64,000 nt of DNA from Octopus sinensis (GCF_006345805.1 NC_043004.1:101680001-101744000); one strand, 5' to 3'; counted from the stretch's first letter, positions 13,014 to 41,284 are shown. Translations and numbers: made by a program. Notes: generated from the sequence alone by a model not told the origin.

Positions 13014-13044
<31 letters not shown>

Positions 13045-13126: not shown

Positions 13127-13169
<43 letters not shown>

Positions 13170-13247
13170 GATATATATATTATGTAATATATATATGAAT
13201 ATATATATATATATATATATCTATATATATATTATATATATATATAC

Positions 13248-13333
<86 letters not shown>

Positions 13334-16740: not shown

Positions 16741-16772
16741 TAGTTAAAGTTATGAAGCATATAATCAGTCAA

Positions 16773-17064: not shown

Positions 17065-17131
17065 TACTAAATATTTTAGATGTTTTCTTAACTGACGTTT
17101 ATTTCACATCCTAATTACAGAGAACTGGGCG

Positions 17132-17192
17132 ATGTCACTTAGATTAATTTTGCTGTTGTTGCTGATTGCATTGATCGGTCTTGCTCTGTCAC
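17132..17192 (+). CDS. Micro-exon gene, coding exon 1: signal peptide MSLRLILLLLLIALIGLALS
   Basis: Acceptor CCTAATTACAG at 17120, 11-nt UTR, ATG at 17132, basic-hydrophobic-ALS signal pattern, phase-1 donor GTAAGT at 17193. Confidence 0.8.
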
Positions 17193-17281
17193 GTAAGTAT
17201 TAGCAATCTTTTGTCTAATAACATTCATAGTTTTAACTAAAGTCAGTGTAATATCAGTGACATTAGGCATGTATATATATA

Positions 17282-17667
17282 CTAGCAGTATCGCCCGGCG
17301 TTGCTCAGGTTTGTAATGGAAATAACTATAAAGCATTTTAGAGAGTTATAGCCAAAAAATAGCAAAAAATGGAAAAAAATGATGGTAAATCTTTTTTTGA
17401 GATTTAAAAAAGTGGGGAGTTGCGTCCCCTAGACAGTTTGTGGTTTGTGTTTCTCATTGTCGACCCCATGTCGAATTTATCGATTTTTTTCAGAACTGGG
17501 GGAACTTTTCAAAATTTTCGCTGCGTTAGTTTTGAATTATGACATTGGGCTATGTGTGTGTCAAGTTTCATCAGAATCGGTTGAAAGCCGTGGTCAGGGT
17601 GAGGGTACGAGAAAACAGACACACAGAAACACGCACAGACAAACTGCCGTTTATATATAGAGAAAGA
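17282..17667 (-). mobile_element. Non-autonomous Helitron, different body
   Basis: Minus strand A|TC...GCAACGCCGGGCGATACTGCTAG|T; same 3' end as the other copies. Confidence 0.75.
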
Positions 17668-18639
17668 TGAATTTCAGAGCATTTACTAGGATTAATAACC
17701 ACACTGTACTGAAACAGCGGTGGAAGTGAAGATGCATATGCTTTTCTTGATCATTTTCAGGTGGGTTGGTGACCAACAAGTCATTAAAAAGCAAGACGCT
17801 GGTAATCTTCTATCGATGAAGTGTAAGTCATCGAGATTTGAAAATAAGAGGCAGATCATTAGTTATGATATGATGAATTATGATATGATGATGTCATATC
17901 ATTAGTTATGATATGACGTTACCAAAGTGTTTCTTGTTAAATACGGAGTAAATGATGCCAGTGTACTTTCGAAGATAGCGACGATTTGTTTGAAGAAGGA
18001 CTAAAAAAGAAAAAGAAAAGAAAGAAAAAAATGCTAGGCCTGACAGAAGATGCTCAAGCGCTGATGCTGTGCACAAGATTGATTGAAGGTTGAGTCGATG
18101 GGTTTGTTGAATGAACGTCCACCAGGAGACCGAAAGGATAAAAAATAACAAAACTCTTAGGATTGAGTTGGTAATTTAACTTCGATAAAAACTCTTACAA
18201 AACAGAGAAAATGTAACACAGTTCTCACCGGAAACAGTAACTGTAGGCTGGTTAAGAGCCGACAGAAGAATTGGTGTCAGTTCCTTGTTACCTGGCACCA
18301 GGGTAGATGGCAGAATACTGACTCTTTCAGTGTCGATAAGTTAACTGGTCATTTATGAAAAACAGACAACAAATGTTTTGAGTTCCAGGTTTATTTCTTA
18401 CAGTTAATCTCTGGCCGCCCTGTTTCTAAGATGAGGCGAGAAAACTTAAGAAAAAGAACAGAATGGCCTATAGTGATGTATGGCCCCGTGGGATTTAGTG
18501 GTACCAGCGCTGTTAATTTTCCGGACTCGTAGCATGAGGACTGCTAAGGAAAGTGCTGAAACCAACTATTACTGTGATTAGAAGGTCTCTAATTTGAAGC
18601 TGTGCAGCTCTGAGTTCAATCTGTGGAAGCTTGTCATTT

Positions 18640-19070
18640 AAAAAGAAGAAAGAGAAGGTGGAGGTGGAGAAGAATGAAAACAAATAGGAGGAAGCGAAGG
18701 AAAAGGAAGAGAAAAAGGAAGACAAGGAGAAGGAGAAGGAGAGGGAAGGAGGAGGAGGGGAAGAGGAGAAGGAGTAAGAAGAAGACTAGGAGGAAGACTA
18801 GGAGGAGTAGAAGGAGTAGGAAAACGATGAGTAAGAGGAAGACTAGGAGGAGGAATAGAAGGAGAAAGAAGGTGATGAGTAAGAGGAAGACTAGGAGGAG
18901 TAAGAGGAAGACTAGGAGGAGGAGGAGTAGAAGGAGTAGGAAAACGATGAGCAAGCGGAAGACTAGGAGGAGGAATAGAAGGAGAAAGAAGGCGATGAGT
19001 AAGAAGAAGAGTAGGAGGAGTAAGAGGAAGAGTAGGAGGATGAAGGCTAGGAGGAGGGACACAAGGAGGA
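18640..19070. repeat. Purine-rich (GGA/GAA) low-complexity tract with a 120-bp internal duplication
   Basis: AAGGAGTAGGAAAACGATGAG at 18811 and 18931. Confidence 0.9.
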
Positions 19071-19367
19071 ACTCCATTGTAGTCGATCCCCAACCCATGT
19101 CAATACACTTATGGGTCTTTAATCGCAATTGTATCGATAGCCAGTGATCTTTTTACTGATTGTCAATTAGTGTTCTATATTTTCAAATCAAATCCAAGAA
19201 ATCCATTCTGTATACTATTTTGATGGTATTATTTTATTTCCATTATTTGACGTTAGTGTTCTTGGTTTTTGTCTGTTACATAGCACTCGTAAGACAGACT
19301 ACTCTTCTGTATCTAACACAGCAACATGTTCCACATAGTTTCGTTCTTTGTGGCAACACGTCATTCA

Positions 19368-19745
19368 TCTTTATATATAAGAGTGAAGTTGTGTGTCTGT
19401 CTCCTACGATTTAGATTCCTAACTACTCCCACATTTTGCGGTGCAGTTTAACCAAAACCGGGTATCTTATAGTCGTGATTCATATCGAGCCCTTCTGGGT
19501 ATTAGCGCGCGTCTACGATGAGTCTACGATTTAAAAAAAATTTACCATAATTTTTTTCGCTATTATATAAGGGAAATAACTCTCTAAAAATGTCTACGAT
19601 GAGTCAACGATTTAAAAAAAAATTTACCATGATTTTTTTTCCATTTTTAATGCATTTTTTTGCTATTTTTTGGCTATAACTCTCTAAAAATGCTTATATA
19701 GTTATTTCCTTTACAAACCCGAGCAACGCCGGGCGATGCTGCTAG
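19368..19745 (+). mobile_element. Non-autonomous Helitron
   Basis: A|TCTTTATATATAA...CGCCGGGCGATGCTGCTAG|T. Confidence 0.85.
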
Positions 19746-20157
19746 TTAATTATACAACGATCCTATATTATATATTATATAACAATTCTATATCATTGAA
19801 CATAATCCAAAATATTGTTTCGTTGCTTTCCTACACCCGCCATCTGGAATTGTCGGTTTGAAATTTCTAATAAAAAAAAAAATGAAACAAAAACAGGAGA
19901 CTTCTGTAATTCTCAGCGTTAGTGAACATGAAAATGAAACAAATCGATAAACGTTTATAAATATTGTAATTAAAATCTGAGATCGAATCGAACTAAAAAA
20001 TAATTCATTTAAAAAAAATCGAATTTTTATACGTATTTCAGTTTCGCTTTCATTAACCACAAAATTCTCATTTCAGTTAAGTTCACTTAAAACTAATAGA
20101 AATTATCTTGAATCAACATCATTGTTCTAAATAAATTCTTTGTTTTATAATCTATAG

Positions 20158-20181
20158 AAAAACGGAATAGACAACAGCGAT
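20158..20181 (+). CDS. Micro-exon 2 (24 nt): (Q)KRNRQQR
   Basis: TTGTTTTATAATCTATAG acceptor, GTAAGT donor, phase 1-1. Confidence 0.75.
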
Positions 20182-20921
20182 GTAAGTATACAAACCAATA
20201 ATTTTATTTTTAACCGCGAATAATTATATGTAATAGGTCTGAACCAGCAACAATTTATTCTGTTTTCCGGCACACAAGTCGATGTAAGCGGGCATTTATA
20301 AACATTCAAACATCGTCACTATCTTTCCTAAACCTGTTGCTTTTTACGTGGGGTTTTTGGTCCAACAAAGCAATCTTAGTGAATTAGTCGACTTATTTTT
20401 GTTGGTTGAAAATTATGGTCTGAAAAATTCGACTTGTATGCCGTAATACATGGTAATTCTTCAATGGAGAATAATCTTTTTAGATAACTTATGGCTGTTG
20501 CATTGCTATTGAGTATAGCCACCTTTTGTTCCCCATCTTGCCTTATTCCAAAGGAGTAATGCCTCCTTCCCACGGGTTCTCATGATGGCAAAGTCATACA
20601 CCTGTATGGCAGGCTAAACTCATTCCTAGGTATCTTCTTTTGAAGATGTAGCCGCACGTGCAACTTGACTATTATGACTGCCCCTGCTTAACCTAGACCT
20701 TAGAGTACCCTCAGAAACGAAGAAACTACAGAAGTGGCCATATTTTATTGTATTAGACGTTCATTATACTCTGATTGCTGCAACGAAATAACTGCAGTCT
20801 GTTTGTGGCTTTAATAAGTTCGAGTCTTGATTTTATTTTGGAGGAATAAAGAGATGGGGGTGGGGGGAAGTTCCCACGCATAAAATTTGATAGTGACAAA
20901 GGCTTGTAAATCATAAATGCC

Positions 20922-21322
20922 TCTCTTTTACGCTCTTTTACTTGTTTCAGTCATTTGACTGCGGCCATGCTGGAGCACCGCCTTTAGTCGAGCAAATCGA
21001 CCCCGGGACTTATTCTTTGTAAGCCCAGTACTTATTCTATCGGTCTCTTTTGCCGAACCGCTATGTGACGGGGACGTAAACACACAGCATCGGTTGTCAA
21101 GCAATGCTAGGGGGACAAACACAAACACACACACACACATATATATATATACATATATACGACGGGCTTCTTTCAGTTTCCGTCTACCAAATCCACTCAC
21201 AAGGCTTTGGTCGGCCCGAGGCTATAGTAGAAGACACTTGCCCAAGGTGCCACACAGTGGGACTGAACCCGGAACCATGTGGTTGGTATGCAAGCTACTT
21301 ATCACACAGCCACACCTGCGCC
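20922..21322 (-). mobile_element. SINE family A
   Basis: Reverse complement of the family A sequence. Confidence 0.85.
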
Positions 21323-21482
21323 TATCAACAATATTAAAAAAAATGCAGGATGATCAAAGTCTAAAAACAATATAGATTTCAAGTTGGATTATCTTTCTCT
21401 CATGCACGTTTACACACACACACACACACACACGTATATATACATGTATGTATACGATTTTACCTCAACAAAAAGTTTTCAG

Positions 21483-21715
21483 ACTAGTTCTGTAGCGCCA
21501 ACAGATGGCAGCACACGGTTGCGTTCACAATGAGAGCTTGCAGTGATCTTCATTTTGCCGTAATAATCCAGAGCGAATCGGAGAAAGTCCTCGATTCGCT
21601 TACGGAAAATGACTTCCAGTCCGGATTCCAAAAGTGGTAGAAACGCTTGGACTGGTGTATTGTTGCACAAGGTTACTATTTCGAAGTAGATGATGTTAAA
21701 ACTTAGGTAAATAGG
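21483..21715 (+). mobile_element. Internally deleted derivative of the 10785 mariner
   Basis: ACTAGTTCTGTAG 5' part joined to GACTTCCAGTCCGGATTCCAAAAGTGG...GATGATGTTAAAACTTAGGTAAATA 3' part. Confidence 0.75.
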
Positions 21716-22107
21716 TTCCGTGGCACCTTGGGCAAGTGTCTTCTACTATAGCCTCGGGCCGACCAAAGCCTTGTGAGTGGATTTGGTAGACGGAAACTGA
21801 AAGAAGCCCGTCGTATATATATGTATATATATATATATGTGTGTGTGTGATGTGTGTGTGTGTGTGTGGTGAGTGTGTGTGTGTGTATACATTTGTGTGT
21901 CTGTGTTTGTCCCCCAAACATCGCTTGACGACCGATGCTGGTGTGTTTATGTCCCCGTAACTTAGCGGTTCGGCAAAAGAAACCGATAGATTAAGTACTA
22001 GGCTTCCAAAGAATAAGTCCTGGGTTCGATTTGCTCGACTAAAAGGAGGTGCTCCAGCATGGCCACAATCAAATCACTGAAACAAGTAAAGAGAGTAAAG
22101 AGTAGAT
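21716..22107 (+). mobile_element. SINE family A, 5' truncated
   Basis: Family A body and 3' end. Confidence 0.8.
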
Positions 22108-22179
22108 AAGTTAATTTTTTAAATTTATGCATTACTAGTCCTGCAACTCTTTCAATCCACCTCGTATGTTCACATTCCC

Positions 22180-22479
22180 TTCATTTTTCTGTCTTCCTTC
22201 TTTCCCTCCTCCCTTCCTTCCTTCCTCCCTTCTTTCCTTTCTTCCTTCCTTCCTTCCTTCCTTCTTCCTTCTTTCTTTCTTCCTTTCTTTCCTTTCTTTC
22301 TTCCTTCCTTCTTCCTTTCTTCATTTCTTTCTTTCTTCCTTTCTTTCCTTCTTTCTTCCTTTATTTCTTTGTTTTTTCTTCTTTCTTTCCCTTCCTTCCT
22401 TCCTTCCTTCTTCCTTCCTTCCTTCCTTCTTTCCTTCCTTCCTTCCTTCCTTCTTCCTTCCTTCCTTTCTTTCTCCTTC

Positions 22480-22516
<37 letters not shown>

Positions 22517-22580
22517 TTCCTTCTTCTTCTTCTTTCGTTTCTTTTTTCTTTCTTTCTTTCTTTCTTCCTTCTATCCTTTC

Positions 22581-22618
<38 letters not shown>

Positions 22619-22632
22619 TTCCATCCTTTCTC

Positions 22633-22703
<71 letters not shown>

Positions 22704-22706
22704 TCA
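22180..22706. repeat. (CTTT/CTTC)n polypyrimidine microsatellite
   Basis: Direct inspection. Confidence 0.95.
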
Positions 22707-22928
22707 AACGAACTCGTTCAACCAGTTTATTCGACTTATGAAAACTCTCATTATCATCAATTTCAAATGTAAATCACTTGGTCCACATTTCAAAAATAAA
22801 TAAGTAAATAAATAAATAAACAAACAAATAAATAAATAGATAAATAAATAATGTAAAATGTCTTCGTGCGCGCAAAAGTATCAGTAATTGTTTTTCTAAA
22901 TAAATTTTCATTGTTTTATCATATCCAG

Positions 22929-22964
22929 ACGAAAAACGCGTACGAGAACCCTCGCGGAGAAAAT
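22929..22964 (+). CDS. Micro-exon 3 (36 nt): (Y)EKRVREPSRRK
   Basis: TTGTTTTATCATATCCAG acceptor, GTAAGT donor, phase 1-1. Confidence 0.8.
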
Positions 22965-23167
22965 GTAAGTATGCAAATTAAGAATCAATTAACAGATGCG
23001 CAGAATTATAGGTGGCAAGTGTGTGTGTGTGTGTGTTTGCGTGTGTGTGTATGTGAATGATTGCGAGCGCATGCGTGTGTGAGTGAGTGCGTGTTGAAGT
23101 ATGATCGTAAAAGTCGTTCTCTGTGTAATAGCGAATTTATTGCTTCTATCTATGCATAAACTTGGAG

Positions 23168-24650
23168 ATACATACATACATGCACACATACATACATACA
23201 TACATACATACACACATACATACACACATACATACATACATACATACATACACACATACATACATACATACACACATACATACATACATACATGCATACA
23301 TACATGCATACATACATACACACATACATACATACATACACACATACATACACACATACATACATACATACATACACACATACATACATACACACATACA
23401 TACACATACATACATACATACATACATACACACATACATATATACAATACAATACATACATGCATACACGTAAACGCACACACATACATACATATATGCA
23501 TACATACATACATACACGCATGCATACATACATGCATACATACATGCATACATACATACATACATACATACATGCATGCATACACGTAAACGCACACATA
23601 TACATACATACATACATGCATACATACATACATACATGCATACATACATGCATACATGCATGCATACATACATACATACATTACATACATACATACATTA
23701 CATACATACATGCATGCATACATGCATGCATACATACATACATACATACATACATACATACATGCATGCACACATGCATACATACATACATACATGCATA
23801 CATGCATACATACATACATACATACATACATGCATACATACATGCATACATACATACACACATACATACATACATACATACACACATACATACACACATA
23901 CATACATACATACACACATACATACATACACACATACATACACATACATACATACATACATACATACATACACACATACATATATACAATACAATACATA
24001 CATGCATACACGTAAACGCACACACATACATACATACATGCATACATACATACATACATACATGCATGCATACATACATACATACATGCATGCATACATA
24101 CATGCATACATACATGCATACATACATACACACATACATACATGCATGCATACACGTAAACGCACACATATACATACATACATACATGCATACATACATA
24201 CATACATACATGCATACATACATGCATACATGCATGCATACATACATACATACATACATTACATACATACATACATTACATACATACATACATGCATGCA
24301 TACATGCATGCATACATACATACATACATACATACATACATGCACACATGCATACATACATACATACATGCATACATGCATACATGCATACATGCATGCA
24401 TACATGCATACATACAGACATACATGCATACATGCATACATACATACATACATACATGCATACATACATGCATACATACATACATACACACACACATACA
24501 CATACATACACACATACATACACACATACATACATGCATACATACATGCATACATACTACATACATACATACATACATACATACATACATACATGCATAC
24601 ATGCATACATACATACATGCATACATGCATACATACATACATGCATACAT
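23168..24650. repeat. (TACA/TGCA)n microsatellite with higher-order duplications
   Basis: Variant motifs ACACGTAAACGCACAC (4x) and TACAATACAATAC (2x, about 545 bp apart). Confidence 0.95.
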
Positions 24651-25065
24651 GATGACTGCAACCCAATTCTGCGGAATACCATCGCTTGATTGCTCTCTTA
24701 TAGCAGCATCCATGTGACTTTTCAGTCCTGCAAGGGTCAACACTTTTATGCAAAAATGTAGCAATCGATGGGCACCTCTATCAGTAGGTGTTTAGAGCCT
24801 TACCATTCGCACTGTTACATACAAATCATTTAGCGCTAGTGTTTAGTATTTAGTTACTTCCCTTCAATTTAAAACTATTTATTGTTTATTATTTTACTTA
24901 ACAAATCCTATTTTAATAAAATATTTACTGTGGGCCAATGACCGCCTGATTAATAAACTACATGTAATTTCTCTTATTTTTTTCTAGTTCTCTTCAACCA
25001 AACAGCTAGGCGGGCAGACTACTATTTATGATAGTAAATTCTTCCCTGCTTGGGAAGAGGAATGT

Positions 25066-25300
25066 ACCTATTTCTTTACTACCCACAAGGGGCTAAACAT
25101 AGAGGGGACAAACTAGGACAGACATAGGTATGAAGTCGATTACATCGACCCCCAGTGCGTAACTGGTACTTAATTTATCGACTCCGAAAGGATGAAAGGC
25201 AAAGTCGACCTCGGCGGAATTTGAACTCACAACGCAGCGGCAGACGAAATACCGTTAAGCATTTCGCCCGGCGTGTTAGCGTTTCTGCCAGCTCGCCGCC
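25066..25300 (-). mobile_element. SINE family C
   Basis: Matches the 43233 copy in reverse. Confidence 0.85.
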
Positions 25301-25421
25301 CTACGGAATATACCACGTAGCTATTCTTCAGTTATTTCATATAACACTTCACTTCTGCAACTATTATTTGACATAATCCAAAGTATTCTGTGAAGAATAT
25401 TTTTCGTTCCTTGTTATTATA

Positions 25422-25662
25422 CTCTTTTACTCTTTTACTTGTTTTAGTCATTTGACTGTGGCCATGCTGGAGCACCTCCTTTAGTCGAGCAAATCGACCC
25501 CCAGGACTTATTCTATCGGTTTCTTTTGCCGAACCGCTAAGTGACGGGGACGTAAACACACCAGCATCGGTTGTCAAGCAATATTGGGGGGAGAAACACA
25601 GACACACAAACACACACACACACACACCACACACAACATACACACACACACACACACCACAC

Positions 25663-25694
<32 letters not shown>

Positions 25695-25862
25695 TACGAC
25701 GGGCTTCTTTCAGTTTCCGTCTACCAAATCCACTCACAAGGCTTTGGTCGACCCGGGGCTATAGCAGAAGATACTTGCCCAAGGTGCCATGCTGTGGAAC
25801 TGAACCAGGAACCATGTGGTTCGTAAGCAAGCTACTTAACCACACAGCCACTCCTACGCCTA
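25422..25862 (-). mobile_element. SINE family A followed by (TTA)n
   Basis: Reverse complement of the family A sequence. Confidence 0.85.
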
Positions 25863-25926
<64 letters not shown>

Positions 25927-26184
25927 GTTTTCTATCATTACTTCTCTATTTGTAATTTAAAATGGAGAAATGAGAATTGTTTCTTAAAATTGAAATCGTG
26001 AGTGAATGGGAAATCAAAATGAAATCAAACTGAATCGAAAAATATTGTAATTGAAATTCGGTATGGAAGCTAACAAAGAATTATTTTAGATTTTAAATAT
26101 CATTTTTCGATTTGAATTCGGAGTTTCTTACAAATAGAGGTTTTCCAATCATCAAATATAACTCATATTATAAAAATTATCAAT

Positions 26185-26385
26185 GGCGCAGGAGTGGCTG
26201 TGTGGTAAGTAGCTTGCTAACAAACCACATGATTCCGGGTTCAGTCCCACTGCGTGGTATCTTGGCAAGTGTCTTCTGCTATAGCCCCGGCGACCAATAC
26301 CTTGTGAGTGGATTGGTAGACGGAAACTGAAAGAAGCCTGTTGTATATGTGGTATATATATATATATATTATCTAATTATATATA

Positions 26386-26437
<52 letters not shown>

Positions 26438-26645
26438 TGTGTGTGTGTTTGTGTGTCTGTGTTTGTCCCCCTAGCATTGCTTGACAACCGATGCTGGTGT
26501 GTGTTTACGTCCCCGTCACTTAGCGGTTCGCAAAAGACACCGATAGAATAAGTACTGGGCTTACAATGAAATGTCCGGGGTCGATTTGCTCGACTAAAGG
26601 CGGTGCTCCAGCATGACTGAAACAAGTAAAAGAGTAAAAGAGTAA
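26185..26645 (+). mobile_element. SINE family A
   Basis: GGCGCAGGAGTGGCTGTGTGG head to GTAAAAGAG tail. Confidence 0.85.
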
Positions 26646-26827
26646 TTGTGTGAAGTTCAGATTTTACTCCTCAACTTTGAAAGAAAGAACAAAACCAAAA
26701 AAAAAAACACACACACACACACAAAACAACAGCAAAACGCAACAAAAAAGACAAAAACAAAACAAAAACAAATTCTCACTCGGAGTTACTGTTCTCAATC
26801 CATTTCGTCTTGTTTTATAATATACAG

Positions 26828-26863
26828 CTAGAGATCATCACCCCGGTAGCTGGCGTCGGCGTC
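26828..26863 (+). CDS. Micro-exon 4 (36 nt): (S)RDHHPGSWRRR
   Basis: TTGTTTTATAATATACAG acceptor, GTAAGT donor, phase 1-1. Confidence 0.85.
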
Positions 26864-28174
26864 GTAAGTATAGAAATTTAAAATAACCTTTTTACCGAAA
26901 AATTAATATGCTATAACTCTATATATTGATTTGTAACATTGGTACAGAGCTACATATTATTGACAAGCGGGTATGGTATATTGAATCGATCTCAGCACTT
27001 GACTGGTACTTTGTTTTATCCACTCTTAAAGGATGAAAGCTAAATCTGACATCTGCAGGATTTGATCTCAGAAATTATAAGGTTGTAGCTTACTACTGCA
27101 ACGTATTTTGTCCGACGCTCTAACGATCATTCTAACCTATCATTTGCCATCCTAATACTTCTGTAAACTATAACAAAATCTTTCAATGGATGATAAACTT
27201 CATACATACATATATACAGGTATAATTGCATACATAAATACATACATATATACATACATGCAGACTTCAGTTTTTTGTCTGAACGTATATAGTTTTCACA
27301 GTCATCTTACCTTCATATGAAATAGCTGAGCTGTAAAAAGTTTTATGTGAATATTTTTCCGTATTTAATGATTAGATATATACTTCAGTATGTATGTGTA
27401 TACGATCACTTCGGCACTTGACGTGTGGCACACCGCACATCTGTAAAGGCAAAATCAGTTTAATGGAGTAAGTGAACTTATGTGCAGCACAAGCATTTGA
27501 TCACTATAAGCAAATCCTCTGTATAAAGTATTGAGCAAGAAATTGCAGAACCATTTTCCTTGGATCGAAAGATTATCATTAAATTAAGTATGTGTAAATG
27601 AGCCAAATAGCTCTTCTGTAAAGCTTCCTTCATATTGCATGTTTATGAAGTATGTACGATAACATACTCTTAAAAGAAAGGCAAAAATAGAAGAAATCTC
27701 AAGCTATGAATAATTATGAAATTTAATTACAGCTAAATCCTGTCGAAACTTTCCAAATCTATCAACATATCTTAAATTTGCGTCAATAGTAAATATACAA
27801 ATCCTCATGCTTAATGCTAAATAAAGAACAAGATCAGAGACAGGAATTTACAACCTTTGGTGAAAGAGTAAAGTATAACTCGGCGTACTGAAAATATATA
27901 ATGCTGAAGAGGCTGTCCTTCAAATATAATAAATAAATCAGACTAATATATGGCTTCAACGAAACAGAATATTAGTTCAAGAAGTTCAGAATTTATCGTT
28001 GGTATTTCATAACATTCAATGGAAAGTGTAAGGATTTCTGAAGATGTATCAACTACTTTCAATCTTATCAATAAATAAATAAAGCTAAAATTGTTCACTT
28101 GACTGTCTTCCAGTACATTTTCTTTATGATTTTGATTAGCTGTCCCGAAGTGTTTTCTCTATATAATTGTACCT

Positions 28175-28567
28175 ACTCTTTTACTTGTTTCAGTCATTTG
28201 ACTGCGGCCATGCTGGAGCACCGCCTTTAGTTGAACAAATCGACCCCGGGACTTATTCTTTGTAAGCCCAGTACTTATTCTATCGGTCTCTTTTGCCGAA
28301 CAGCATCGGTTGTCAAGCAATGCTAGGGGGACAAACACAGACACACAAACACACACACACACACACACACACCACACACATATATATATATATGCATATA
28401 TACGACAGGCTTCTTTCAGTTTCCGTTTACCAAATCCACTCACAAGGTATTGGTCGGCCCGGGGCTATAGCAGAAGACACTTGCCCAAGATGCCACGCAG
28501 TTGGACTGAACCCGGAACCATGTGGTTGGTTAGCAAGCTACTTACCACACAGCCACTCCTGCGCCTA
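28175..28567 (-). mobile_element. SINE family A with internal deletion
   Basis: Reverse complement of the family A sequence. Confidence 0.85.
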
Positions 28568-29693: not shown

Positions 29694-29726
29694 GTGAAGA
29701 TCATGACGTTGACTGGCATGGAGATC
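29694..29726 (+). CDS. Micro-exon 5 (33 nt): (R)EDHDVDWHGD
   Basis: TTGTTTTCTAATATATAG acceptor, GTAAGT donor, phase 1-1. Confidence 0.85.
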
Positions 29727-30870: not shown

Positions 30871-30951
30871 ATGGACATCATGGCAAACACTGGCCTGGAT
30901 ATCCCGACAAACACTGGCCTGGATATCCTGACAAACACTGGCCTGGACATC
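30871..30951 (+). CDS. Micro-exon 6 (81 nt): (H)GHHGKHWPGYPDKHWPGYPDKHWPGH
   Basis: TTGTTTTATAATATACAG acceptor, GTAAGT donor; a 33-nt module plus two internal 24-nt repeats. Confidence 0.85.
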
Positions 30952-31954
30952 GTAAGTGCATCTAAAATAACATTTTTACTACAGGATCCAATATGTGATA
31001 TTTCTATGTATTGATATCTAATACTATTAAAAGGCTAATTTTTGTATACGGAAGGGTATAGCATATACTTGGCTGGAACTATATTTTATCCATTCGGGAA
31101 AGTTGAGAACCAAAATTGACGTCAGCGGAATTTGATCGGAAAGCAGAAAAGTTGATATATAATTAATTACTGGACGATATTTTGTCCAATTCTTCGCCTC
31201 TATAGAACTATCTATTAAACTGCAACAAAATATTTCAGTAGGTAATAAATTTTACACACACACGCGCACACACACATACACACAAACACACATACATACA
31301 TACATGCACATACACACACACACAGTGAATGCAGACTTCAGCTCAATTGAACGCATATAATTATTGCTTTCATAAAGGCAGCATAAGAAACTTTTGAGCG
31401 ACAAAATACTGTTATGATTATAGTTTTGCGTATATAAATATTATATATTACTTTAGCATAGATGTATAAATAAGCCAAATTAATTTCGATAAGGAACTAC
31501 TCGCACTGCATGCTTATGCAGTATGTCAATACAATACAATAAAACATAAAAGGAAAGGAAACTCAAGCTATGAATTACTATAATTTAGACTTCGTTGAAC
31601 TATCGAACACTGCCAACATATATATTAAATTAAATACACGTCAATAGTAAAGAGATAATATCGCCACGGTTGGTTGAGATATGATCGAAATCTGAGCATA
31701 AACGTCAAAGTTTTGTGCAGAAACCAAAATACCTCTAGAATATCAAAATGGAAAAGTTAAATCCTAATTACCGTTAGTCAAGTTTAAGCTATAAATTGAA
31801 CGATGAAATATTATTTATAAGAAAAAAAGTTACAAATTCCTGTAATTTTGATGTGTAACGATGATATCATGTCCAGAAAACAAAGGGAATTAAAAATTAG
31901 TGATAAAATTTGAAACACTAAATTATAAACTACATAAAAAACAAGAACTTACAA

Positions 31955-32330
31955 GACGCAGGAGTGGCTGTGTGGTAAGTAGCTTGCTAACCAACCACAT
32001 GGTTCTGGGTTCAGTCCCACTGCGTGGCATCTTGGGCAAGTGTCTTCTGCTATATGCCTTGTGAGTGGATTTGGTTGACGGAAACTGAAAGAAGCCTGTT
32101 GTATATATGTATATATATATATGTGTGTGCATTTGTGTACCCCTAGCATTGCTTGACAACTGATGCTGGTGTGTTTACGTCTCCGTCACTTAGCGGTTCG
32201 GCAAAAGAGACCGATAGAATAAGTACTGGGCTTACAAAGAATAAGTCCCGGGGTCGAGTTGCTCGATTAAAGGCGGTGCTCCAGCATGGCCGCAGTCAAA
32301 TGACTGAAACAAGTAAAAGAGTAAAGAGTA
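31955..32330 (+). mobile_element. SINE family A
   Basis: Family A head and tail. Confidence 0.85.
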
Positions 32331-33009
32331 TAGTCGAAAAGGTAGAATACAAATCAATGTATTACGAAAGCAAAACGCTAAAGAAACTATCTCCATTGTT
32401 AAAAATTAGTCAGACGTATTGTTCCAACGTAAACCGGATTCAAGAAGCTAAGGATTTATCACCTTGGAATGAAAGAAGATTTCTTGAAATATTTTCAAAC
32501 AGTTGTCTAATTCCTGTACTTTTATTAAAATTAACCAAACCGATGAAACTAAATAACATGATCGAACACTATTTATGTATTATAAACTGATTATCTCAAA
32601 ATCTCATGAAATCATTGTTTCCTGTTATATCATGGCATCTCAGTAAACCGAAAGGGAAAAAGTACGGGGATGTACATCGCAGCTACATATTAACAAAATG
32701 TCGCATGATAAAAGCCTTGTACACAAACACAATAACTCGTTTGTAAAATGATTGGGCAACCAGAAAGCTGGGGTTGATTGTCAAAGCTTTACGACTAGCC
32801 AAAGTCTACATAATACTTTTTTTTTTATCAAACTTGATGCGGAGTACATCAGATGTGCAGTGTCATTTCTCTATATATTCTATGATATGATGACGACCTT
32901 TTTTGCTCTGAATTAGCTTGTTACATGCTACCAACTCCCAGACAAACCAGTCTCAGCGTCTAGCTTTCAGCTCTTAAGATTTTGTAATTCTCTTTCCGTA
33001 GTTGATCTG

Positions 33010-33395
33010 TGGAAGCACTCCGTCGGTTACGACGACGAGGGTTCCGGTTGATCCGAATCAACGGAACAGCCTGCTCGTGAAATTAACGTGGAAGTGGCTG
33101 AGCACTCCACAGACACGTGCACCCTTAACGTAGTTCTCGGGGATATTCAGTGTGACACAGAGAGTGACAAGGCCGGCCCTTTGAAATACAGGTACAACAG
33201 AAACAGGAAGTAAGAGTGAGAGAAAGTTGTGGTGAAAGAGTACAGCAGGGATGACCACCATCCCCTGCCGGAGCCTCGTGGAGCTTTTAGGTGTTTTCGC
33301 TCAATAAACACTCACAACACCCGGTCTGGGAATCGAAACCGCGATCCTATGACCGTGAGTCCACTGTCCTAACCACTGGGCCACTGCACCTCCAC
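33010..33395 (-). mobile_element. SINE family B subfamily
   Basis: Near reverse complement of 62737-63120. Confidence 0.85.
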
Positions 33396-33647
33396 AGTTG
33401 ATCTACAGATGTTCAAACTGAACATCATCAACACTGATCTCACTTGGCTCACAAATAAAATATCTTAACCTAAGACATCTATTATGTGCTGCGGAATATG
33501 AGATAATTTCACTTATGTCTCGATACCCTCGGTATAGAATATTGACATCGCAACAAATTACATTCTCTGCAATATTTCCTTACGTTTTTGAACTTGCTGG
33601 ACTTCAAATCCCGAGGGGCTCAGGTTTGTGGTTCACCTTCGGGATTC

Positions 33648-33885
33648 GATAATATTAATTTCAAATTTTAACACAAGGTCAGCAATTTTGGGAGAGGGGT
33701 AAGTTGATTACATCAACCCCAGTATCCAACTGGTACTTTTTTTTATCTGGTACTATTTTCATCGTCCTCGAAAGGATGAAAAGTAAAGTCGACCTCGACG
33801 GAATTTGAACTCAGAATGTAAAGACGGACGAAATGCCGCTAATCATTTTGTTCGGCGTGCTAACGATTCTGCCATCTCGCCCCTT
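33648..33885 (-). mobile_element. SINE family C, diverged
   Basis: AAAGTCGACCTCGACGGAATTTGAACTCAGAA core. Confidence 0.75.
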
Positions 33886-34882
33886 TAGGGTTCGATAATA
33901 TTAGAATCAATCTAGTTCTAAGTTGATTCGATTATAATCTCGCCTTCCACCTCACCTCAACCAAATCGACCATTATTTCCCCAAATTATTTCTGATGTAG
34001 GCAGAAGGCCTCACATTTTTGAGGAAAGGTATTGTCTATCGTGTCGACTTTAATTCTCGGTTGGTACTTATTTTATTAATTTCTTGAGAATGAAAGGCTA
34101 AATCAGCCTTTTTAGGGTTTCGAAGAACTGTAAATTATTTTGTCCCCCAATATCTGATTTTAATAATTCAGAACCATTTTTAAGGCAATAGCTCGTTTTT
34201 AAGCATTTATATATCACTTAATCAGAAGACAGGCTTCTAATTACGCTATAGAGCGTCTATAAATCTATACATTTAAGTTTGATCTATTTCTATGTATTTT
34301 ATACAACTATTACTTGTGCCATTTTACTTCTACAAGATAATATCTGTCTCTAGCGCTATGAGAATAAACTATCCAATTAATAGTCGCGATAGTAAGGACA
34401 TCGATTCTTAGGTTGTGATGTAAAATATGTCATGATATCAATTTTCTTTGTGCTTATTTTACATATTTCAAGATATTCTAAACAGAATAATTTCTGTTTA
34501 TTTATGCCTTTTTGGGGTGAGCAAATCACAGATTTTTTTTAATTTCTTTCTCGTTTGAAACTTGAAATTTAGAAAAAGAAGCTTTGTCTTAAAACCGAAA
34601 TCGTGAATGCATGTGAAATAAATTTGAAAATTTTAAAGATCTCACAACTGAATTTCGGAATGAAATCGAAGAAAACAAAATTTTATTTGTTTCAATATTA
34701 AGTGTCCATGAGTGTTCGTATTTTAAATTCAGCTATCAAATTTCTTTCCAACTGACTCTCCCTATACAAAATTGTTATATGAAAAGATGGGTTTTTTTTG
34801 AATGTCAAACTTTAGACAGATTCTTGAGAATAATGTCCTGATTGGTAACTCTTTTCTCTTAATAAAATTTTGTTTTATGCAG

Positions 34883-34915
34883 ATGGACACCATGGCCAAC
34901 ACTTACATGGACATC
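34883..34915 (+). CDS. Micro-exon 7 (33 nt): (H)GHHGQHLHGH
   Basis: TTTTGTTTTATGCAG acceptor, GTAATT donor; paralogous to exon 6. Confidence 0.8.
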
Positions 34916-34990
34916 GTAATTATACACATATAAAATAGCATTTTAACCACGATGATATTATCTATGAGTTGTAGACCGAATGCTTCAATA

Positions 34991-35293
34991 TCTTTATATA
35001 TAAAAGTGAAGTTGTGTGAGTGTCTGTCTCCTACGATTTAGATTCCTAACTACTCCCACATTTTGCGGTGCAGTTTAACCAAAAGCGGGTATCTTATAGT
35101 CGTGATTTATATCGAGCCCTTCTGGGTATTAGCGCGCGTCTACGATGAGTCTACGATTTAAAAAAAAGTTTACCATCATTTTTGCCCATTTTTAATGCAT
35201 TTTTTTGCTATTATATAAGAGAAGTAACTCTCTAAAAATGCTTATATAGTTATTTCCCTTACAAACCCGAGCAACGCCGGGCGATACTGCTAG
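34991..35293 (+). mobile_element. Non-autonomous Helitron
   Basis: A|TCTTTATATATAA...CGCCGGGCGATACTGCTAG|T. Confidence 0.85.
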
Positions 35294-36326
35294 TATTTTA
35301 TAAAATAATTATGATTTCTGTCGTATAAAAATAACACCTCAATGTAAATTGAAGGCAATTAAGAAGTATGAGACGGTATATCGCAGCAGCTATTTTGTAG
35401 CAAAATGATAAAAAGGCTGTAACTTAATGAAGAAATCTATCTATAGTGGACCACCAGAAAGCTGAAGTTGATTAACGAAGCTTTACTACTTGCCAAATTT
35501 CTAAAGCTATTTCTTAAGAAGGAAAAAGCAGCCTAGAAATATCCACTGTAAAGCAGTGTCAACAATATTCCTTTACAACAGCCAATAAGCTACAAATATG
35601 CAGTGCCCCTTTCTCTGCAGTTTCTATTAATGCGATAACTGCCTTCATTGCTATAAATTACTTAGTTGCGTACCACATTCCACTAGATGAACTTCTCTCA
35701 ATCATTTCTTCTGCTGGCAACCTTCTGCAGTTCTCTTCCTAAGCATATTTTCCGGCACTTATAGATACACACATGTTAAAGCTGATCATCACCTGCATTG
35801 ATCTCACCATACTTGTAAAGTCCCACCTCCAGACTTAGAGATAAAATATCATAAACCCAAACACAGCGGGATGATTGAAGTCATTTCACATGCGTTTTTG
35901 ACGGTTTTGGGGGATAGGTTAAGCACACTATGCTACTTTTTCCCCCCATTTAATACAGCACTTTTGTGCTCATATAAGAAGAAATTAATTCTATTACTAA
36001 CATTTGCACGGCAGAGTGGCATAGCAACAGAAAACTGGTTACATATTCAACATTGCTTCCTTATGCCATTAACTTTGTCTTCAAATTTCACTGGTTTCTT
36101 GTATGCCTTTCATCTTCTGGGTTTGATAACATTAGAACCGATCTAGCACTAGATCAATTAAATCAAACGTAAAATTGCCCCTAAATCTCTCACCCTTTTT
36201 CAAAATTTATTTCTAACATAATCACAAAGCCACACATTTATTTCCATCTCCCAGAATCAAATGAAAATAATATACCACAAGTAATTATTTTCTTCTAAAT
36301 ATATTTCACTTTGTTTTATAATATAG

Positions 36327-36345
36327 GAACCCTGGCATAAATCTC
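36327..36345 (+). pseudogene. Dead copy of the exon 8-type micro-exon
   Basis: Same flanks as exon 8, but a deletion removes CAGCTGGACAC, the donor is ATAAGT instead of GTAAGT and the length is 19 nt. Confidence 0.75.
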
Positions 36346-36863
36346 ATAAGTATACCAAACTAGAATTATAATTTATCTGCGAAGACTTAATGTGCGGTTC
36401 CATTAAATTAATCTGTGGCGTCAAATGTCATGCACTATTTCGTAATCATAGTTTTTCTATGTCGATTACTTGATAAAATCCAAATGATCCCAAACAAAGT
36501 AATGTATTTCCAACTGTTTTAAAAGTAATTTTTATATTTTAGTTTCACCTGTTTGAAATTTGTTTCAAAATGATGAACGGATACCAAATAGGATACATTT
36601 GAATAATTAAAAGATTAATTGAGTTTTGAAATGGAATCGAAAAAATAAGTTTAGTTGTTTAAGTACTGGCTTCCAGTTTCCGTACCTTAAGTTCAATATT
36701 TAAAATCCTTTCAAACCGACTCTTCTCACAAAATTTCATCTACAAAAATATCAGTTGATCAAATCTTATAATTTATTTCCATCTCCCAGAATCAAATGAA
36801 AATAAAATATGAAAAGTAATTATTTTCTTCTAAAGATATTTCACTTTGTTTTATAATATACAG

Positions 36864-36896
36864 CTGGACACTATAGGAGGCGCTGGCATAGACGTC
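36864..36896 (+). CDS. Micro-exon 8 (33 nt): (P)GHYRRRWHRR
   Basis: TTGTTTTATAATATACAG acceptor, GTAAGT donor. Confidence 0.85.
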
Positions 36897-37973
36897 GTAA
36901 GTATACCGATCTAGAATTATATTTTATCTGCGATGAGTTAATGTGTGGTTGCATTAAATTAATCTCTAAAATTGGTATAAATTCAATTAAAAAAAATGTT
37001 CTTGTATGCCTTAATCTTCTGGGTTTGATAACACTAGAACCGATCTAGCACTAGGTTGATTAAATCAAACAGAAAATTGCCCCTAAATCTCTCATCCTTT
37101 TCCAAAATTTATTTCTAACATAAGCACAAAGCCACGCATTGTTTTTTGGGAAATGTATTGCTTATCAATTAGTCACAATACTTGGTATGTTTATATATTT
37201 CGTGGAATCTGTAAGAAGGAAACGCAAAGCCATCTTTGGTGGGTTTCGAAATACTACAAGTTACTTTGTCTACTGCTCTTTGATTCTCGTTATTCACAAC
37301 ACATCTCAATCTCCTAACGACACTCTTAAAACGTGTAGATCACTCAGCAGGTAATAATACAATAGAGCGCTAGTAGGTCCATACAATTAAATTAGATATA
37401 TAAATCTTTCTACTGCTTTAACGGCCCTATTTTACATTTACAACATATGTTGATGACTTTACAGTGTGACAATTGAGAATCCTGTTATTACTCATTGCAA
37501 GATGTCCTACATTATTTCGGTGGCTGTGGCGTCAAATGTCACACACTATTTCGTAATCATAGTTTTTCTACATCGATTACTTGATAAAATCCAAATGATC
37601 TCAAACAAAGTAATGTATATCCAAATGTTTTAAAAGTAATTTTTGTATCATATTTTCACCTGTTTGAAATTCGTTTCAAAATTATTAATAAATGGCAAAT
37701 AGAATACATTTGATTAATTAAAAGATTAATTGAATTTTGGAATGAAATTGAAGAAATAAGTTTAATTTTTAAGTACTGGCTTCCAGTTTCCGTACTTATA
37801 GTTCAATATTTAAAATTCTTTCAAACCGACTCTTCTCACAAAATTTCATCTACAAAAATATCAGTTGATCAAATCTTATAATTTATTTCCATCTCCCAGA
37901 ATCAAATGAAAATAAAATATGAAAAGTAATTATTTTCTTCTAAAGATATTTCACTTTGTTTTATAATATACAG

Positions 37974-38006
37974 CTGGACACTATAGGAAGCGCTGGCATA
38001 GACGTC
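37974..38006 (+). CDS. Micro-exon 9 (33 nt): (P)GHYRKRWHRR
   Basis: Duplicate of exon 8, 1110 bp downstream. Confidence 0.85.
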
Positions 38007-38234
38007 GTAAGTATAACAATCTAGAATTATATTTTATCTGCGATGAGTTAATGTGTGGTTGCATTAAATTAATCTCTAAAATTGGTATAAATTCAATTTT
38101 TAAAAAAATTTTCTTGTATGCCTTTCATCTTCTGGGTTTGATAACACTAGAACCGATCTAGCACTAGGTTGATTAAATCAAACAGAAAATTGCCCCTAAA
38201 TCTCTCACCCTTTCTCAAAATTTATTTCTAACAT

Positions 38235-38663
38235 GTCTGGAAGATCCCGGAAGGAATTGTGCCAAATTTTGGCATTGTAAGCTACACCAATGCTAGAACG
38301 GGACGACACTGCATAGTGCCAAAGATCCCAGCAATGCCATCACGCTTCAGGACCAGCTTCTGCAACAGCCTGGGTTTCAAGGGCCCACAGCTTTTTAATA
38401 TTCTCCCAAAGAGTCTGAGGAACTTGCACCAAGTAGATGTAGCCGTTTTTAAATCAAAGCTGGACATCTTCCTGTCAAGAGTCCCAGATGAACCTACCTC
38501 ACGGCAAGAGGTGCAAATGAGAGTAGCTGTATCAAACTCCATTCTTCACCAAGTGCCACATATTAGACGAGGTTCGTCGCAATAACAGTGTAGCACAAAA
38601 CGGCGGTGCATCAGCATGGCCGCAGCTCTGAGCTGAAACTAGAAAAAAAAACAAAAAAAAAAA
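38235..38663 (+). mobile_element. 5'-truncated CR1/L2-group LINE with A-rich tail
   Basis: GPQLFNILPKSLRN..FKSKLDIFLSRVPDEP..SNSILHQ; the empty site is visible in the paralogous intron near 37120. Confidence 0.8.
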
Positions 38664-39512
38664 CACAAAGCCACGCATTGTTTTTTTGGGAAATGTATTG
38701 CTTATCAATTAGTCACAATACTTGGTATATTTATATTTCGTGGAATCTGTAAGAAGGAAACGCAAAGCCATCTTTGGTGGGTTTCGAAATACTACAAGTT
38801 ACTTTGTCCACCGCTCTTTGATTCTCGTTATTCACAACACATATCAATCTCCTAACGACACTCTTAAAACGTGTAGATCACTCAGCAGGTAATAATACAA
38901 TAGAGCGCTAGTAGGTCCATACAATTAAATTAGATATATAAATCTTTCTACTGCTTTTACGGCCCTATTTTACATTTACAACATATGTTGATGACTTTAC
39001 AGTGTGACAATTGAGCATCCTGTTATTACTCATTGCAAGATGTCCTACATTATTTCGGCGGCTGTGGCGTCAAATGTCACACATTATTTCGTAGTCATAA
39101 TTTTTCTACGTCGATTACTTGATAAAATCCAAATGATCTCAAACAAAGTAATGTATGTCCAACCGTTTTAAAAGTAATTTTTGTATTATATTTTCACCTG
39201 TTTGAAGTTCGTTTCAAAATTATTAATGAATGGCAAGTAGAATACATTTGATTAATTAAAAGATTAATTGAATTTTGGAATGAAATCGAAAAAATAAGTT
39301 TAGTTGTTTAAGTACTGGCTTCCAGTTTCCGTACTTATAGTTCAATATTTAAAATTCTTTCAAACCGACTCTTCTCACAAAATTTCATCTACAAAATTAT
39401 CAGTTCATCAAATCTTATAATTTATTTCCATCTCCCAGAATCAAATGAAAATAAAATACGAAAAGTAATAATTTTCTCCTAAAGATGTTTCACTTTGTTT
39501 TATAATATACAG

Positions 39513-39545
39513 CTGGACACTATAGGAAGCGCTGGCATAGACGTC
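39513..39545 (+). CDS. Micro-exon 10 (33 nt): (P)GHYRKRWHRR
   Basis: Identical to exon 9; spacing 1539 = 1110 + 429-bp LINE. Confidence 0.85.
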
Positions 39546-40384
39546 GTAAGTATAACAATCTAGAATTATGTTTTATCTGCGAAGAGTTAATGCGTGGTTG
39601 CATTAAGTTAATCTCTAAAATTGGTATAAATTCAATTACTTTTTTACGAGAGAGAAAAGTTTATTGAATCGACCTCAGTACATGAATGGTACAGTTGCCT
39701 TATCCATTCCGGAAGGACGAAATCCAGCACTAACATCGGCGAAATTTGATCTCAAGGAGTAACTATCTACTGTAATCATATTAGGTTATTTGACATAATC
39801 CAAAATATTTTAAATAGAATATTTCCTGCTCAGTTTTTAGTACTTAAAAAAAAATTGTACGTTCGAAATTTGAAAATCGGATCTATGGTAAATATTACCT
39901 ATGTTATTTCTTAGATAAAGAGATTATAAATTTTATCGCTTTCAGATGTAACAAAATTTAAGTGTTGCTGTATGAATACAAGCTATAAAGTACATAAAAA
40001 ATTTATTAAAATTATTAAGAATTGTTTGTATTACAATTAATTCACATATTTACAATTATTCAAAAATATATAATTGTTGTAATCTACTTAATCATAAATA
40101 CATAAATAATTTCTAAAACAAATACTAAATTACTTAGTTTATCGGAGGAAAAAACTGTAAGTAAAAGTTTAAACATTTATAAATAAATTAGCTATTAAGC
40201 CCCACCCCCAGAAATACGCGCTTGAAAATAAATGTTTTTTATTGCAATATGTCATTAAGTAAAATTATTCATATATTATTATTATCATTATTATTATTAC
40301 CATTAATTGATAAATTAAATGAATGTATTCATAAAGTATAATTTAGTATAATGAAGATAGCTTATTTGTAATCTATCACCGTGT

Positions 40385-40722
40385 GAAGGCGCGTGGCTCA
40401 GTGGTTAGAGCGTCGAGCTTACGATCGTGAGGTTGTGAGCTCGAATCCCGGACCGGGCTGCGTGTTGTGTTCTTGAGCAAGACACTTTATTTCACGTTGC
40501 TTCAGTTCACTCAGCTGTAGAAATGAGTTGCGACGTCACAGGTGCCAAGCTGTATCGGCCCTTGCCTTTCCCTTGGACAACATCGGTGATGTGGAGAGGG
40601 GAGGCCGGTATGCATGGGCGACTGCTGGTCTTCCATAAAACAACCTTGCCCAGACTTGTGCCTCAGAGGGTAACTCTCTAGGTGCAAACCCATGGTCAGT
40701 GTCTGACCGATGGGGGTCACCA
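40385..40722 (+). mobile_element. SINE family B-related (same head, different 3' part)
   Basis: GGCGCGTGGCTCAGTGGTTAGAGC head and TTCTTGAGCAAGACACT core. Confidence 0.75.
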
Positions 40723-41205
40723 ATTAATATTTAACTACGAATATAATGATGTATTTTACAGTAAATATAAATATTTTCACTGGAACTAATACGAAATATC
40801 ACGAATTAATCCACTAAAAAAGTCTTTTTCCAAATGCTCACCTTACAGAATTTAAAATAACAAACCCTATGTCTCAATACAAGAAACTTAAAAAGGAATC
40901 AGTATAAAGATAAAAAATCAAAAAACTTAGTATGAATCCGACATAGCAACAATTAAGGAAACAAATGCTTTAGTCTAATAATTTAATGTCTTAAAATGAT
41001 TTTGAGCAAGTGAACTAGTGGTTAGAAGAACAAGATGGTGAAATAAAGTCCTAAGCAGACGATCAGAAAGCCCACGGATCAAAATGGGGTGTGAGCAGAA
41101 CATCCATGGTCAGGGAAATAAACTGAAAGCAAAAAAAACACCGCTCATACATTGATACTGATCATTACAGTGACATAAAATGCCATTTTGTTTCTATCTT
41201 TGCAG

Positions 41206-41234
41206 ACGGAAGACATTACGCCCGCCATGGTTAA
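41206..41234 (+). CDS. Micro-exon 11, last coding exon: (H)GRHYARHG*
   Basis: TTTCTATCTTTGCAG acceptor; 33-nt exon 41206-41238 with TAA at 41232-41234 and GTGAGT donor at 41239. Confidence 0.8.
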
Positions 41235-41284
41235 AAATGTGAGTATACTAAATTAAATTACTAACCTTATTCAATAAAAAAAAT

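Follow-up and report, generated by a model that had tools for sequence, protein, structure and literature searches.

The question raised by this locus is whether a series of very short open segments, spread over about 24 kb of a 64,000-nt window of Octopus sinensis DNA (GCF_006345805.1, NC_043004.1:101680001-101744000; the window is the whole stretch analyzed, and its two strands amount to 128 kb), makes up a single gene composed of micro-exons, as proposed in a first-pass annotation. The analysis supports a real gene, for which our confidence is high. The fuller description of this locus as a lineage-specific protein-coding gene of ~24 kb in a genome of the O. vulgaris group, with a secreted, polycationic and disordered product, is also considered probable.

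The exon model was read from the genomic DNA, and the eleven exons were recovered in their assigned places, with the sizes, AG/GT sites, and phases originally proposed. All of them lie on the + strand, with canonical AG acceptors and GT donors where applicable. Exon 1 (17132-17192, 61 nt) contains the ATG and a predicted signal peptide, MSLRLILLLLLIALIGLALS/Q (the slash marks the cleavage site), and ends at a phase 1 donor, GTAAGTAT. Nine internal exons of phase 1-1 follow it. The first three are exon 2 (20158-20181, 24 nt), encoding (Q)KRNRQQR(Y); exon 3 (22929-22964, 36 nt), encoding (Y)EKRVREPSRRK(S); and exon 4 (26828-26863, 36 nt), encoding (S)RDHHPGSWRRR(R). They are followed by exon 5 (29694-29726, 33 nt), which encodes the acidic module (R)EDHDVDWHGD(H), exon 6 (30871-30951, 81 nt), which encodes GHHGKHWPGYPDKHWPGYPDKHWPGH, and exon 7 (34883-34915, 33 nt), a paralog of exon 6 that encodes GHHGQHLHGH. 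The last internal exons, of 33 nt each, are exon 8 (36864-36896), encoding (P)GHYRRRWHRR, and its recent tandem copies exon 9 (37974-38006) and exon 10 (39513-39545), both encoding (P)GHYRKRWHRR. Exon 11 (41206-41238, 33 nt) encodes (H)GRHYARHG before a TAA at 41232-41234, and a donor-like GTGAGT is found at 41239. Splicing would create the junctions ...GCTCTGTCAC/AAAAACGGAA between exons 1 and 2, ...CAGCGAT/ACGAAAAACG between exons 2 and 3, and ...GACGTC/ACGGAAGACA between exons 10 and 11.

The spliced model comprises 436 nt and translates into 143 aa followed by the TAA. The stop-free coding sequence (CDS) of 432 nt claimed earlier equals 143 codons plus the stop, so that coding sequence takes up just a part of the final 33-nt exon. 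Introns between the exons range from 1077 to 3931 nt, which confirms the architecture of a signal exon with a phase 1 donor and symmetric 3n micro-exons separated by introns of 1.1-3.9 kb. Exons 2-10 make up 79% of the CDS, and exons of 36 nt or less account for 60% of it. The GC content of the internal exons is 52%, vs 21-34% in the adjoining 100-nt flanks. Two AATAAA hexamers on the + strand (41273-41278 and 41282-41287, annotated as one feature at 41273..41288), 39-48 nt 3′ of the stop, are candidates for the polyadenylation signal, provided that the transcript ends with exon 11. In this architecture, the cleavable signal peptide comes from exon 1, which ends in phase 1, the nine symmetric 3n exons follow, and the final ...RHG-stop comes from exon 11.

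Two of the three frames, phase 1 and frame 0, are free of stops through all internal exons. Frame 0 (...LDTIGGAGIDV...) is open across all the micro-exons and exon 11, ending at the GTGAGT donor, and it shows a purine-rich first codon position; both features would fit an alternative in which the exons are spliced and read in phase 0, or in which the RNA is non-coding. The openness of frame 0 is, however, automatic, because the phase 1 protein is almost devoid of L, I, V, and M: if phase 1 is coding, there are only two sites, after an xTA or xTG codon, at which frame 0 could gain a stop. The converse is far more demanding. If frame 0 were coding, a third-position T would create a phase 1 stop at 30 sites, and the first 29 are without T in all 29 cases (P ~0.002-0.006), the thirtieth at-risk site being the terminal TAA in exon 11. 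In addition, exon 1 sets phase 1, no start exon in phase 0 was seen, and the frame 0 peptide has neither a Pfam match nor a homolog in the protein search. We therefore read the product in phase 1, on the strength of this asymmetry in stop avoidance and of the phase set by exon 1; frame 0 was rejected as the coding frame by the same asymmetry, and the alternative as a whole is considered very improbable. Frame 0 may nevertheless be used besides phase 1. Synonymous and non-synonymous changes, both among paralogs and between the two genomes compared below, were too few to be used and were evenly split between frames.

The splice signals of the array provide a second line of evidence. The 18-mer acceptor TTGTTTTATAATATACAG had 10 matches at ≤3 mismatches vs 0.58 expected, and no shuffled sequence reached 10. 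As stated in the first-pass annotation, most micro-exons share this acceptor: 8 of the 10 fit it at ≤2 mismatches, and exons 7 and 11 have different acceptors. Exon 7 has a divergent acceptor flank and also a weaker donor, GTAATT. Of the donor GTAAGTAT, the window has ten copies on the + strand and a single one on the − strand; the gene region contains eight of the former, seven of these being donors of the model. The internal units have a T-rich tract ending in TATACAG before the exon and an extended GTAAGTAT donor after it, and in front of the internal acceptors, at ~35 nt from the AG, a conserved TTCTAAA(T/G)A element marks a putative branch-point region. Profiles built for nhmmer from 45 nt before and 60 nt after the internal exons, and searched on both strands of the 64 kb, matched the nine internal exons and one degenerate unit (36287-36402), all on the + strand, with no further match elsewhere in the 64 kb and none on the − strand. 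Furthermore, a heuristic scan of both strands (128 kb) for start exons, defined by an ATG, an h-region of the signal-peptide type, and a donor fitting GTRAGT, gave a single match, at 17132. Altogether, the exon array and its splice motifs are far beyond chance expectation.

These signals also bear on the possibility that there is no gene at this locus, and that a local array of dispersed repeats carries segments bounded by chance AG...GT pairs. The units are indeed repeats of each other, flanks included, and the region is rich in transposable elements and microsatellites. Against this explanation, the lengths of the unit bodies (24, 33, 36, 48, and 81 nt) differ by multiples of 3 only, the units are open in the frame of the signal exon and close with a stop and AATAAA, the best-conserved part is the splice signals, and the unit with a lost donor has decayed in length too. 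We therefore find a pure repeat array hardly credible.

The resemblance among the units points instead to how the gene arose. Homologous intron sequence flanks all nine internal exons, which are copies of one exon-plus-flank unit generated by repeated tandem duplication. An 11-residue module, x-G-H-(H/Y)-x-x-x-W-H-(G/R)-x, is still visible in exons 5, 6, 7, 8, and 11. Exons 8-10 lie in tandem copies of 1.1-1.5 kb that are 96.6-97.5% identical, the 402-nt exon 9 unit showing 97.5% identity to the exon 8 unit. Exon 6 is a 33-nt module grown through an internal 24-nt tandem repeat, detected by Tandem Repeats Finder (TRF) at 30884-30951 (period 24, 2.8 copies, 95% matches). The bodies of exons 2-4 are too diverged to align with other units, and these exons are older units. 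In most pairs of old units the similarity of exon bodies was 0.39-0.70, vs 0.7-0.9 for the acceptor flanks; the splice signals are kept, and it is the coding sequence that drifts or diversifies. The array thus grew by tandem duplication of a 33-nt exon with its flanking intron, one exon having extended internally.

The degenerate tenth unit, a pseudo-exon at 36287-36402 (+ strand), has ATAAGT in place of a functional donor in both genomes compared here, the second being that of O. vulgaris. The AG of its acceptor has been lost by deletion in the window and is intact in the O. vulgaris reference (61457-61610, L001 numbering), whose annotation takes this unit as a terminal coding exon. The two alleles therefore differ at what may be an alternative 3′ end.

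The O. vulgaris genome offers a second copy of the gene. Positions 1-45205 of the window align to OX597821.1 (GCA_951406725.2) at 96-99% identity, which marks the window as Octopus DNA of a different individual, a different haplotype, or a closely allied species. The gene lies there at about 86,531,541-86,558,423 on the minus strand, and the exon model placed on that reference gives an intact open reading frame (ORF) of 12 exons and 158 aa with in-frame differences only. Exons 1, 2, 3, 5, 6, 7, and 11 and their flanks are identical in the two genomes. Exon 4 measures 48 nt in O. vulgaris vs 36 nt in the window, with 12 extra nt in frame and two substitutions; around it, a single substitution was found in the 400 nt downstream and none in the 150 nt upstream. 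The 33-nt exons encoding GHYR(R/K)RW(H/Q)RR number four in O. vulgaris (62064-65863, L001 numbering) vs three in the window (36864-39545), and two of the four O. vulgaris copies carry a His-to-Gln change. Because exon copy number differs between the two genomes, unit duplication is still ongoing.

Existing annotation was examined in the same species. The gene had been described as hidden, a claim that has to be withdrawn in part: the O. vulgaris protein CAI9727123.1 (169 aa, 'Hypothetical predicted protein / Mediator subunit 23', UniRef100_A0AA36B4B3) already includes micro-exons 2, 3, 5, and 6, in the phase 1 frame and with 100% identity over those exons. Residues 1-98 of this protein correspond to positions 500-593 of the 1304 of Pfam Med23. 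The model begins with two Med23 exons that lie beyond the window, at 27-30 kb upstream of exon 1, and ends in read-through of the decayed tenth unit. It leaves out exons 4 and 7 with the frame kept, which is the only hint of skipping and comes from a predicted model. Med23 itself is located upstream on the same strand (1-13280, L001 numbering), split into two O. vulgaris gene models.

On this basis the micro-exons could belong to Med23 transcripts as an alternative 3′ part, which is the arrangement of CAI9727123.1, and not form an independent gene. The junction of Med23 to micro-exons 2, 3, 5, and 6 in phase agrees with that interpretation, as does the position of Med23 upstream on the same strand; in addition, a Pfam search of the + strand stop-free segments at 42-64 kb revealed no further Med23 exon (positions 594-1304) and no other match. 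Such a transcript would, however, encode a Mediator subunit 23 cut below half its length and extended with a polybasic tail, and it would bypass an ATG/signal exon of the micro-exon series itself, which lies 3 kb before exon 2 with the matching phase 1 donor and GTAAGTAT. Moreover, the final part of the model is read-through of the decayed unit, whose donor is dead. A Med23 tail is thus regarded as improbable. Since the phased signal exon is skipped and Med23 is truncated, the fusion in CAI9727123.1 is probably a chimera. Consensus gene builders often merge neighbouring or nested genes, and the micro-exon gene may lie within a very long Med23 intron. The O. vulgaris annotation drew on Iso-Seq and RNA-seq data and on protein alignments, together with Augustus, GeneMark, EVM, and PASA (PMC10700109); that this independent pipeline put micro-exons 2, 3, 5, and 6 together in the frame of our model speaks for the gene. 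That a 24-nt exon was reached across a 30-kb intron suggests that junction hints, beyond pure ab initio prediction, lie behind the model.

The statement that no named homolog could be recognized was borne out by the searches. Among 5.8 billion proteins, the 143-aa product matched only the chimeric CAI9727123.1, and the exact sequence was absent from a collection of 15 billion. No Pfam family passed its cut-off for the product, and searches of Pfam and PDB with both open frames gave no meaningful match, a GRP match of 18 bits falling short of its 30-bit cut-off. The Med23 fragment, used as a query, brought up nothing but short pieces of its own region, and octopus Med23 itself was missing from the results. 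A 33-aa read-through of exon 6 gave eight weak matches, all of them low-complexity translations of a 'PG[CFY]PD' repeat, and these are not relatives. Among the papers searched, none connects micro-exon genes to octopus or to cephalopods at large, nor does any contain one of seven peptide strings of the product. Because the searched collections are poor in cephalopod proteins, the lack of a homolog indicates just that the product does not belong to a widespread family.

With regard to the product, the predicted signal peptide has an Arg in its n-region, a 15-residue h-region, and A-x-S at −3/−1. Cleavage at the predicted ALS/Q site would leave a mature chain of 123 aa for the window and of 138 aa for O. 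vulgaris. The 123-aa mature part contains 27 Arg, 26 His, 8 Trp, and 0 Cys, exactly as first counted. The computed isoelectric point is 11.7-11.9 and the grand average of hydropathy is −2.5 (window and O. vulgaris chains). The computed charge rises from +27 at pH 7 to +45 at pH 5.5, with ranges over the two chains of +27 to +33 and +45 to +50, respectively. Disorder-promoting residues represent 58% of the total, and order-promoting residues 15%. From the sequence we infer that the mature chain is secreted, intrinsically disordered, and extremely basic.

Three zones can be distinguished in this chain: an N-terminal polybasic zone (exons 2-4) ending in RRRR/E; a core zone (exons 5-7), acidic to neutral, rich in His, Gly, Pro, Trp, and Tyr and containing an 8-residue repeat; and a polybasic tail of GHYR(R/K)RWHRR repeats with a terminal Gly-stop. 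RRRR/E is a furin-type site, and a Gly before the stop is the usual amidation signal. The chain is probably cut at its RR, KR, and RRRR sites and amidated at the terminal Gly, as judged from these motifs. With its 8-residue period and its His, Trp, Gly, and Pro, the repeat in exon 6 may resemble the copper-binding octarepeat region of the mammalian prion protein.

Our leading, still tentative, proposal for function is a secreted precursor of host-defence peptides, cationic and tuned by pH or metal through His. It is made because the composition fits the concept of antimicrobial peptides that are cationic and intrinsically disordered (CIDAMPs), whose activity depends on charge and disorder and not on sequence (PMC6399351).

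The same gene could instead encode a structural, metal-coordinating or coacervating protein of a matrix or adhesive (beak, radula, sucker cuticle, or egg-case cement), with His, Arg, Trp, and Tyr as the stickers that would form cross-links or cation-pi contacts. The composition of exons 5-7 and their 8-residue repeat would suit such a role; besides, His-rich secreted proteins harden the jaws or beaks of other invertebrates, and a design of one repeat per exon is typical of collagen and tropoelastin. On the other side, a product with 22% Arg, dense RR, KR, and RRRR sites, and a terminal Gly looks more like a processed peptide precursor; it is small (~15 kDa) and apparently without the Gly/Ala-rich blocks of known beak proteins, and the searches of protein collections, Pfam, and PDB showed no similarity. 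This structural role is the main alternative and is considered rather unlikely.

In the host-defence proposal as in the structural one, the exon phases would leave room for variation of the product. The internal exons end in C or T and start with AA, AC, CT, GT, or AT, and the number of junction stops derived from these exon ends is zero over all 2^9 skip patterns. Because all internal exons are symmetric and no junction stop arises, any subset of them could be skipped or duplicated in frame, so that exon skipping and changes in copy number could both vary the product. A wider proposal, that a cephalopod independently evolved a schistosome-style micro-exon gene in which combinatorial skipping of phase 1-1 exons and ongoing gain or loss of 33-nt units between haplotypes diversify a polycationic secreted peptide, rich in His, Arg, and Trp, on the body surface, is put forward with considerable doubt; if correct, it would be the first diversity generator of the micro-exon gene (MEG) type outside flatworms, in a free-living animal.

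Several points weigh against the interpretation of this locus as a gene for a secreted polycationic peptide. The model rests on genomic sequence and not on transcripts, junction reads, or peptides, and frame 0 is likewise stop-free. Conservation was compared across two nearly identical genomes only, and the exon 4 indel sits within a hexamer-like CGTCGN repeat, because of which its being in frame could reflect slippage alone. The sole annotated model lacks exons 1, 4, and 7-11 and has the remainder fused to Med23. Cephalopod proteins are few in the searched collections, which leaves the orphan status weakly supported, and the proposal on function draws on composition alone. Finally, exon 1 is preceded by ~300 nt of interspersed repeat sequence (16772-17066, + strand, at least 66 nt upstream of the ATG, with ~92% identical copies at 19361-19745 and 34990-35295), which leaves the promoter and transcription start undefined.

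Other elements were recorded in and around the gene. The window has 35% GC and many microsatellites and interspersed repeats. Close to exon 1, a possible acceptor, ttacag/AGAACTGGGCG, lies 12 nt 5′ of the ATG. Intron 1 carries a 385-bp insertion (17282-17666, no strand assigned) that is not present in the O. vulgaris reference and opens with an inverted copy of the upstream repeat, so that exon 1 stands between inverted repeat arms in the window haplotype only. The same intron contains a purine-rich tandem array with a 120-nt period (18698-19056), and intron 3 a 1.5-kb (ATAC)n tract (23168-24650); from these two sequences come the long ORFs of the ORF list, which are spurious. In the last intron, positions 40384-40718 hold an interspersed repeat whose head is tRNA-like (GGCGCGTGGCTCAGTGGTTAGAGC...GAGCTCGAATCCCGG) and which has an 88% identical copy at the O. 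vulgaris locus (16466-16801, L001 numbering); it is probably a short interspersed nuclear element. Rfam and ARAGORN detected no RNA genes in the window, this repeat included. Outside the gene, the strongest non-microsatellite array is a 474-bp tandem repeat at 49718-51416 (3.6 copies, 97% identity, TRF score 3168). A 189-aa ORF at 4921-5490 (− strand) with a partial RVT_1 match (E-value 9.6e-06, below the gathering score) is a retroelement remnant. Stop-free segments at ~60900-61500 on the + strand (e.g., HIVSECPKLAQREYQRRHDNGARMIHWELC...) presumably resemble the ORF tails of invertebrate non-LTR retroelements and gave no Pfam match.

Should transcripts confirm the model, micro-exon architecture would emerge as a convergent way to build as well as vary small secreted disordered proteins beyond flatworms and parasites. 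A protein growing exon by exon would also have been caught under way, with three vs four copies of a unit, a decaying unit, and an exon enlarged by a repeat, and a new candidate host-defence or metal-binding peptide would be added for cephalopods, a group in which few are known. The probable Med23 chimera would likewise illustrate how micro-exon genes escape or corrupt automatic annotation.

Comparison with known systems places the gene in a wider context. Vertebrate secretory calcium-binding phosphoprotein (SCPP) genes (caseins, statherin, and histatins) have a signal exon and many short 3n exons that are often skipped, and their products are disordered and secreted; the family evolves fast through exon duplication, and histatins are His-rich cationic antimicrobial peptides of saliva. 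SCPP coding introns are in phase 0, and SxE phosphorylation motifs are present. The octopus gene resembles them in its signal exon followed by many short 3n exons and in its disordered, predicted secreted product, and differs in that all of its introns are in phase 1, S-x-E is absent from the 143 aa, and there is no homology, the family belonging to another phylum. With tropoelastin and the fibrillar collagens, the latter with 54-bp exons, it shares one module per exon, a uniform codon split at all exon borders that lets cassettes be gained or lost in frame, and exon duplication, whereas those proteins are large and structural, with another composition and generally longer exons. Squid beak histidine-rich proteins and the Nereis jaw protein are marked by Gly/His-rich repeats, expression in hard tissue, and metal or catechol cross-linking; exons 5-7 resemble them in composition only, unlike the Arg-rich flanks, and the searches of protein collections and PDB showed no similarity. 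As in CIDAMPs (PMC6399351), the predicted chain would be linear, strongly cationic, rich in disorder-promoting and poor in order-promoting residues, with a charge that depends on pH through His; CIDAMPs are a functional class defined by composition and not a family, and hornerin is intracellular and S100-fused, and not a signal-peptide precursor.

The closest architecture is that of MEGs, which have exons of 6-81 bp and introns of 0.1-5 kb, produce pools of isoforms by exon skipping, and are described as restricted to platyhelminths (PMC4350168; architecture also described in bioRxiv 10.1101/2023.06.21.545858 and PMC4015677). Like them, the octopus gene has a signal-peptide exon at the 5′ end, a CDS located mostly (79%) in symmetrical exons of 24-81 nt, introns of 1.1-3.9 kb, and a small predicted secreted product without known domains; its exon bodies diverge faster than their surroundings, and its phases permit in-frame skipping. 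Unlike them, it belongs to a free-living cephalopod, the paralogy of its micro-exons is plain to see, all being copies of a single 33-nt module whose flanking intron is conserved, its product contains 21% His and 22% Arg, and skipping would merely be permitted by its phases. The parallel with Schistosoma drawn in the first-pass annotation thus stands for the architecture and falls for family membership, as the sequences show no similarity. Because a MEG-like architecture occurs here without sequence relationship, and MEGs are described from platyhelminths only, the sensible reading of this comparison would be convergence.

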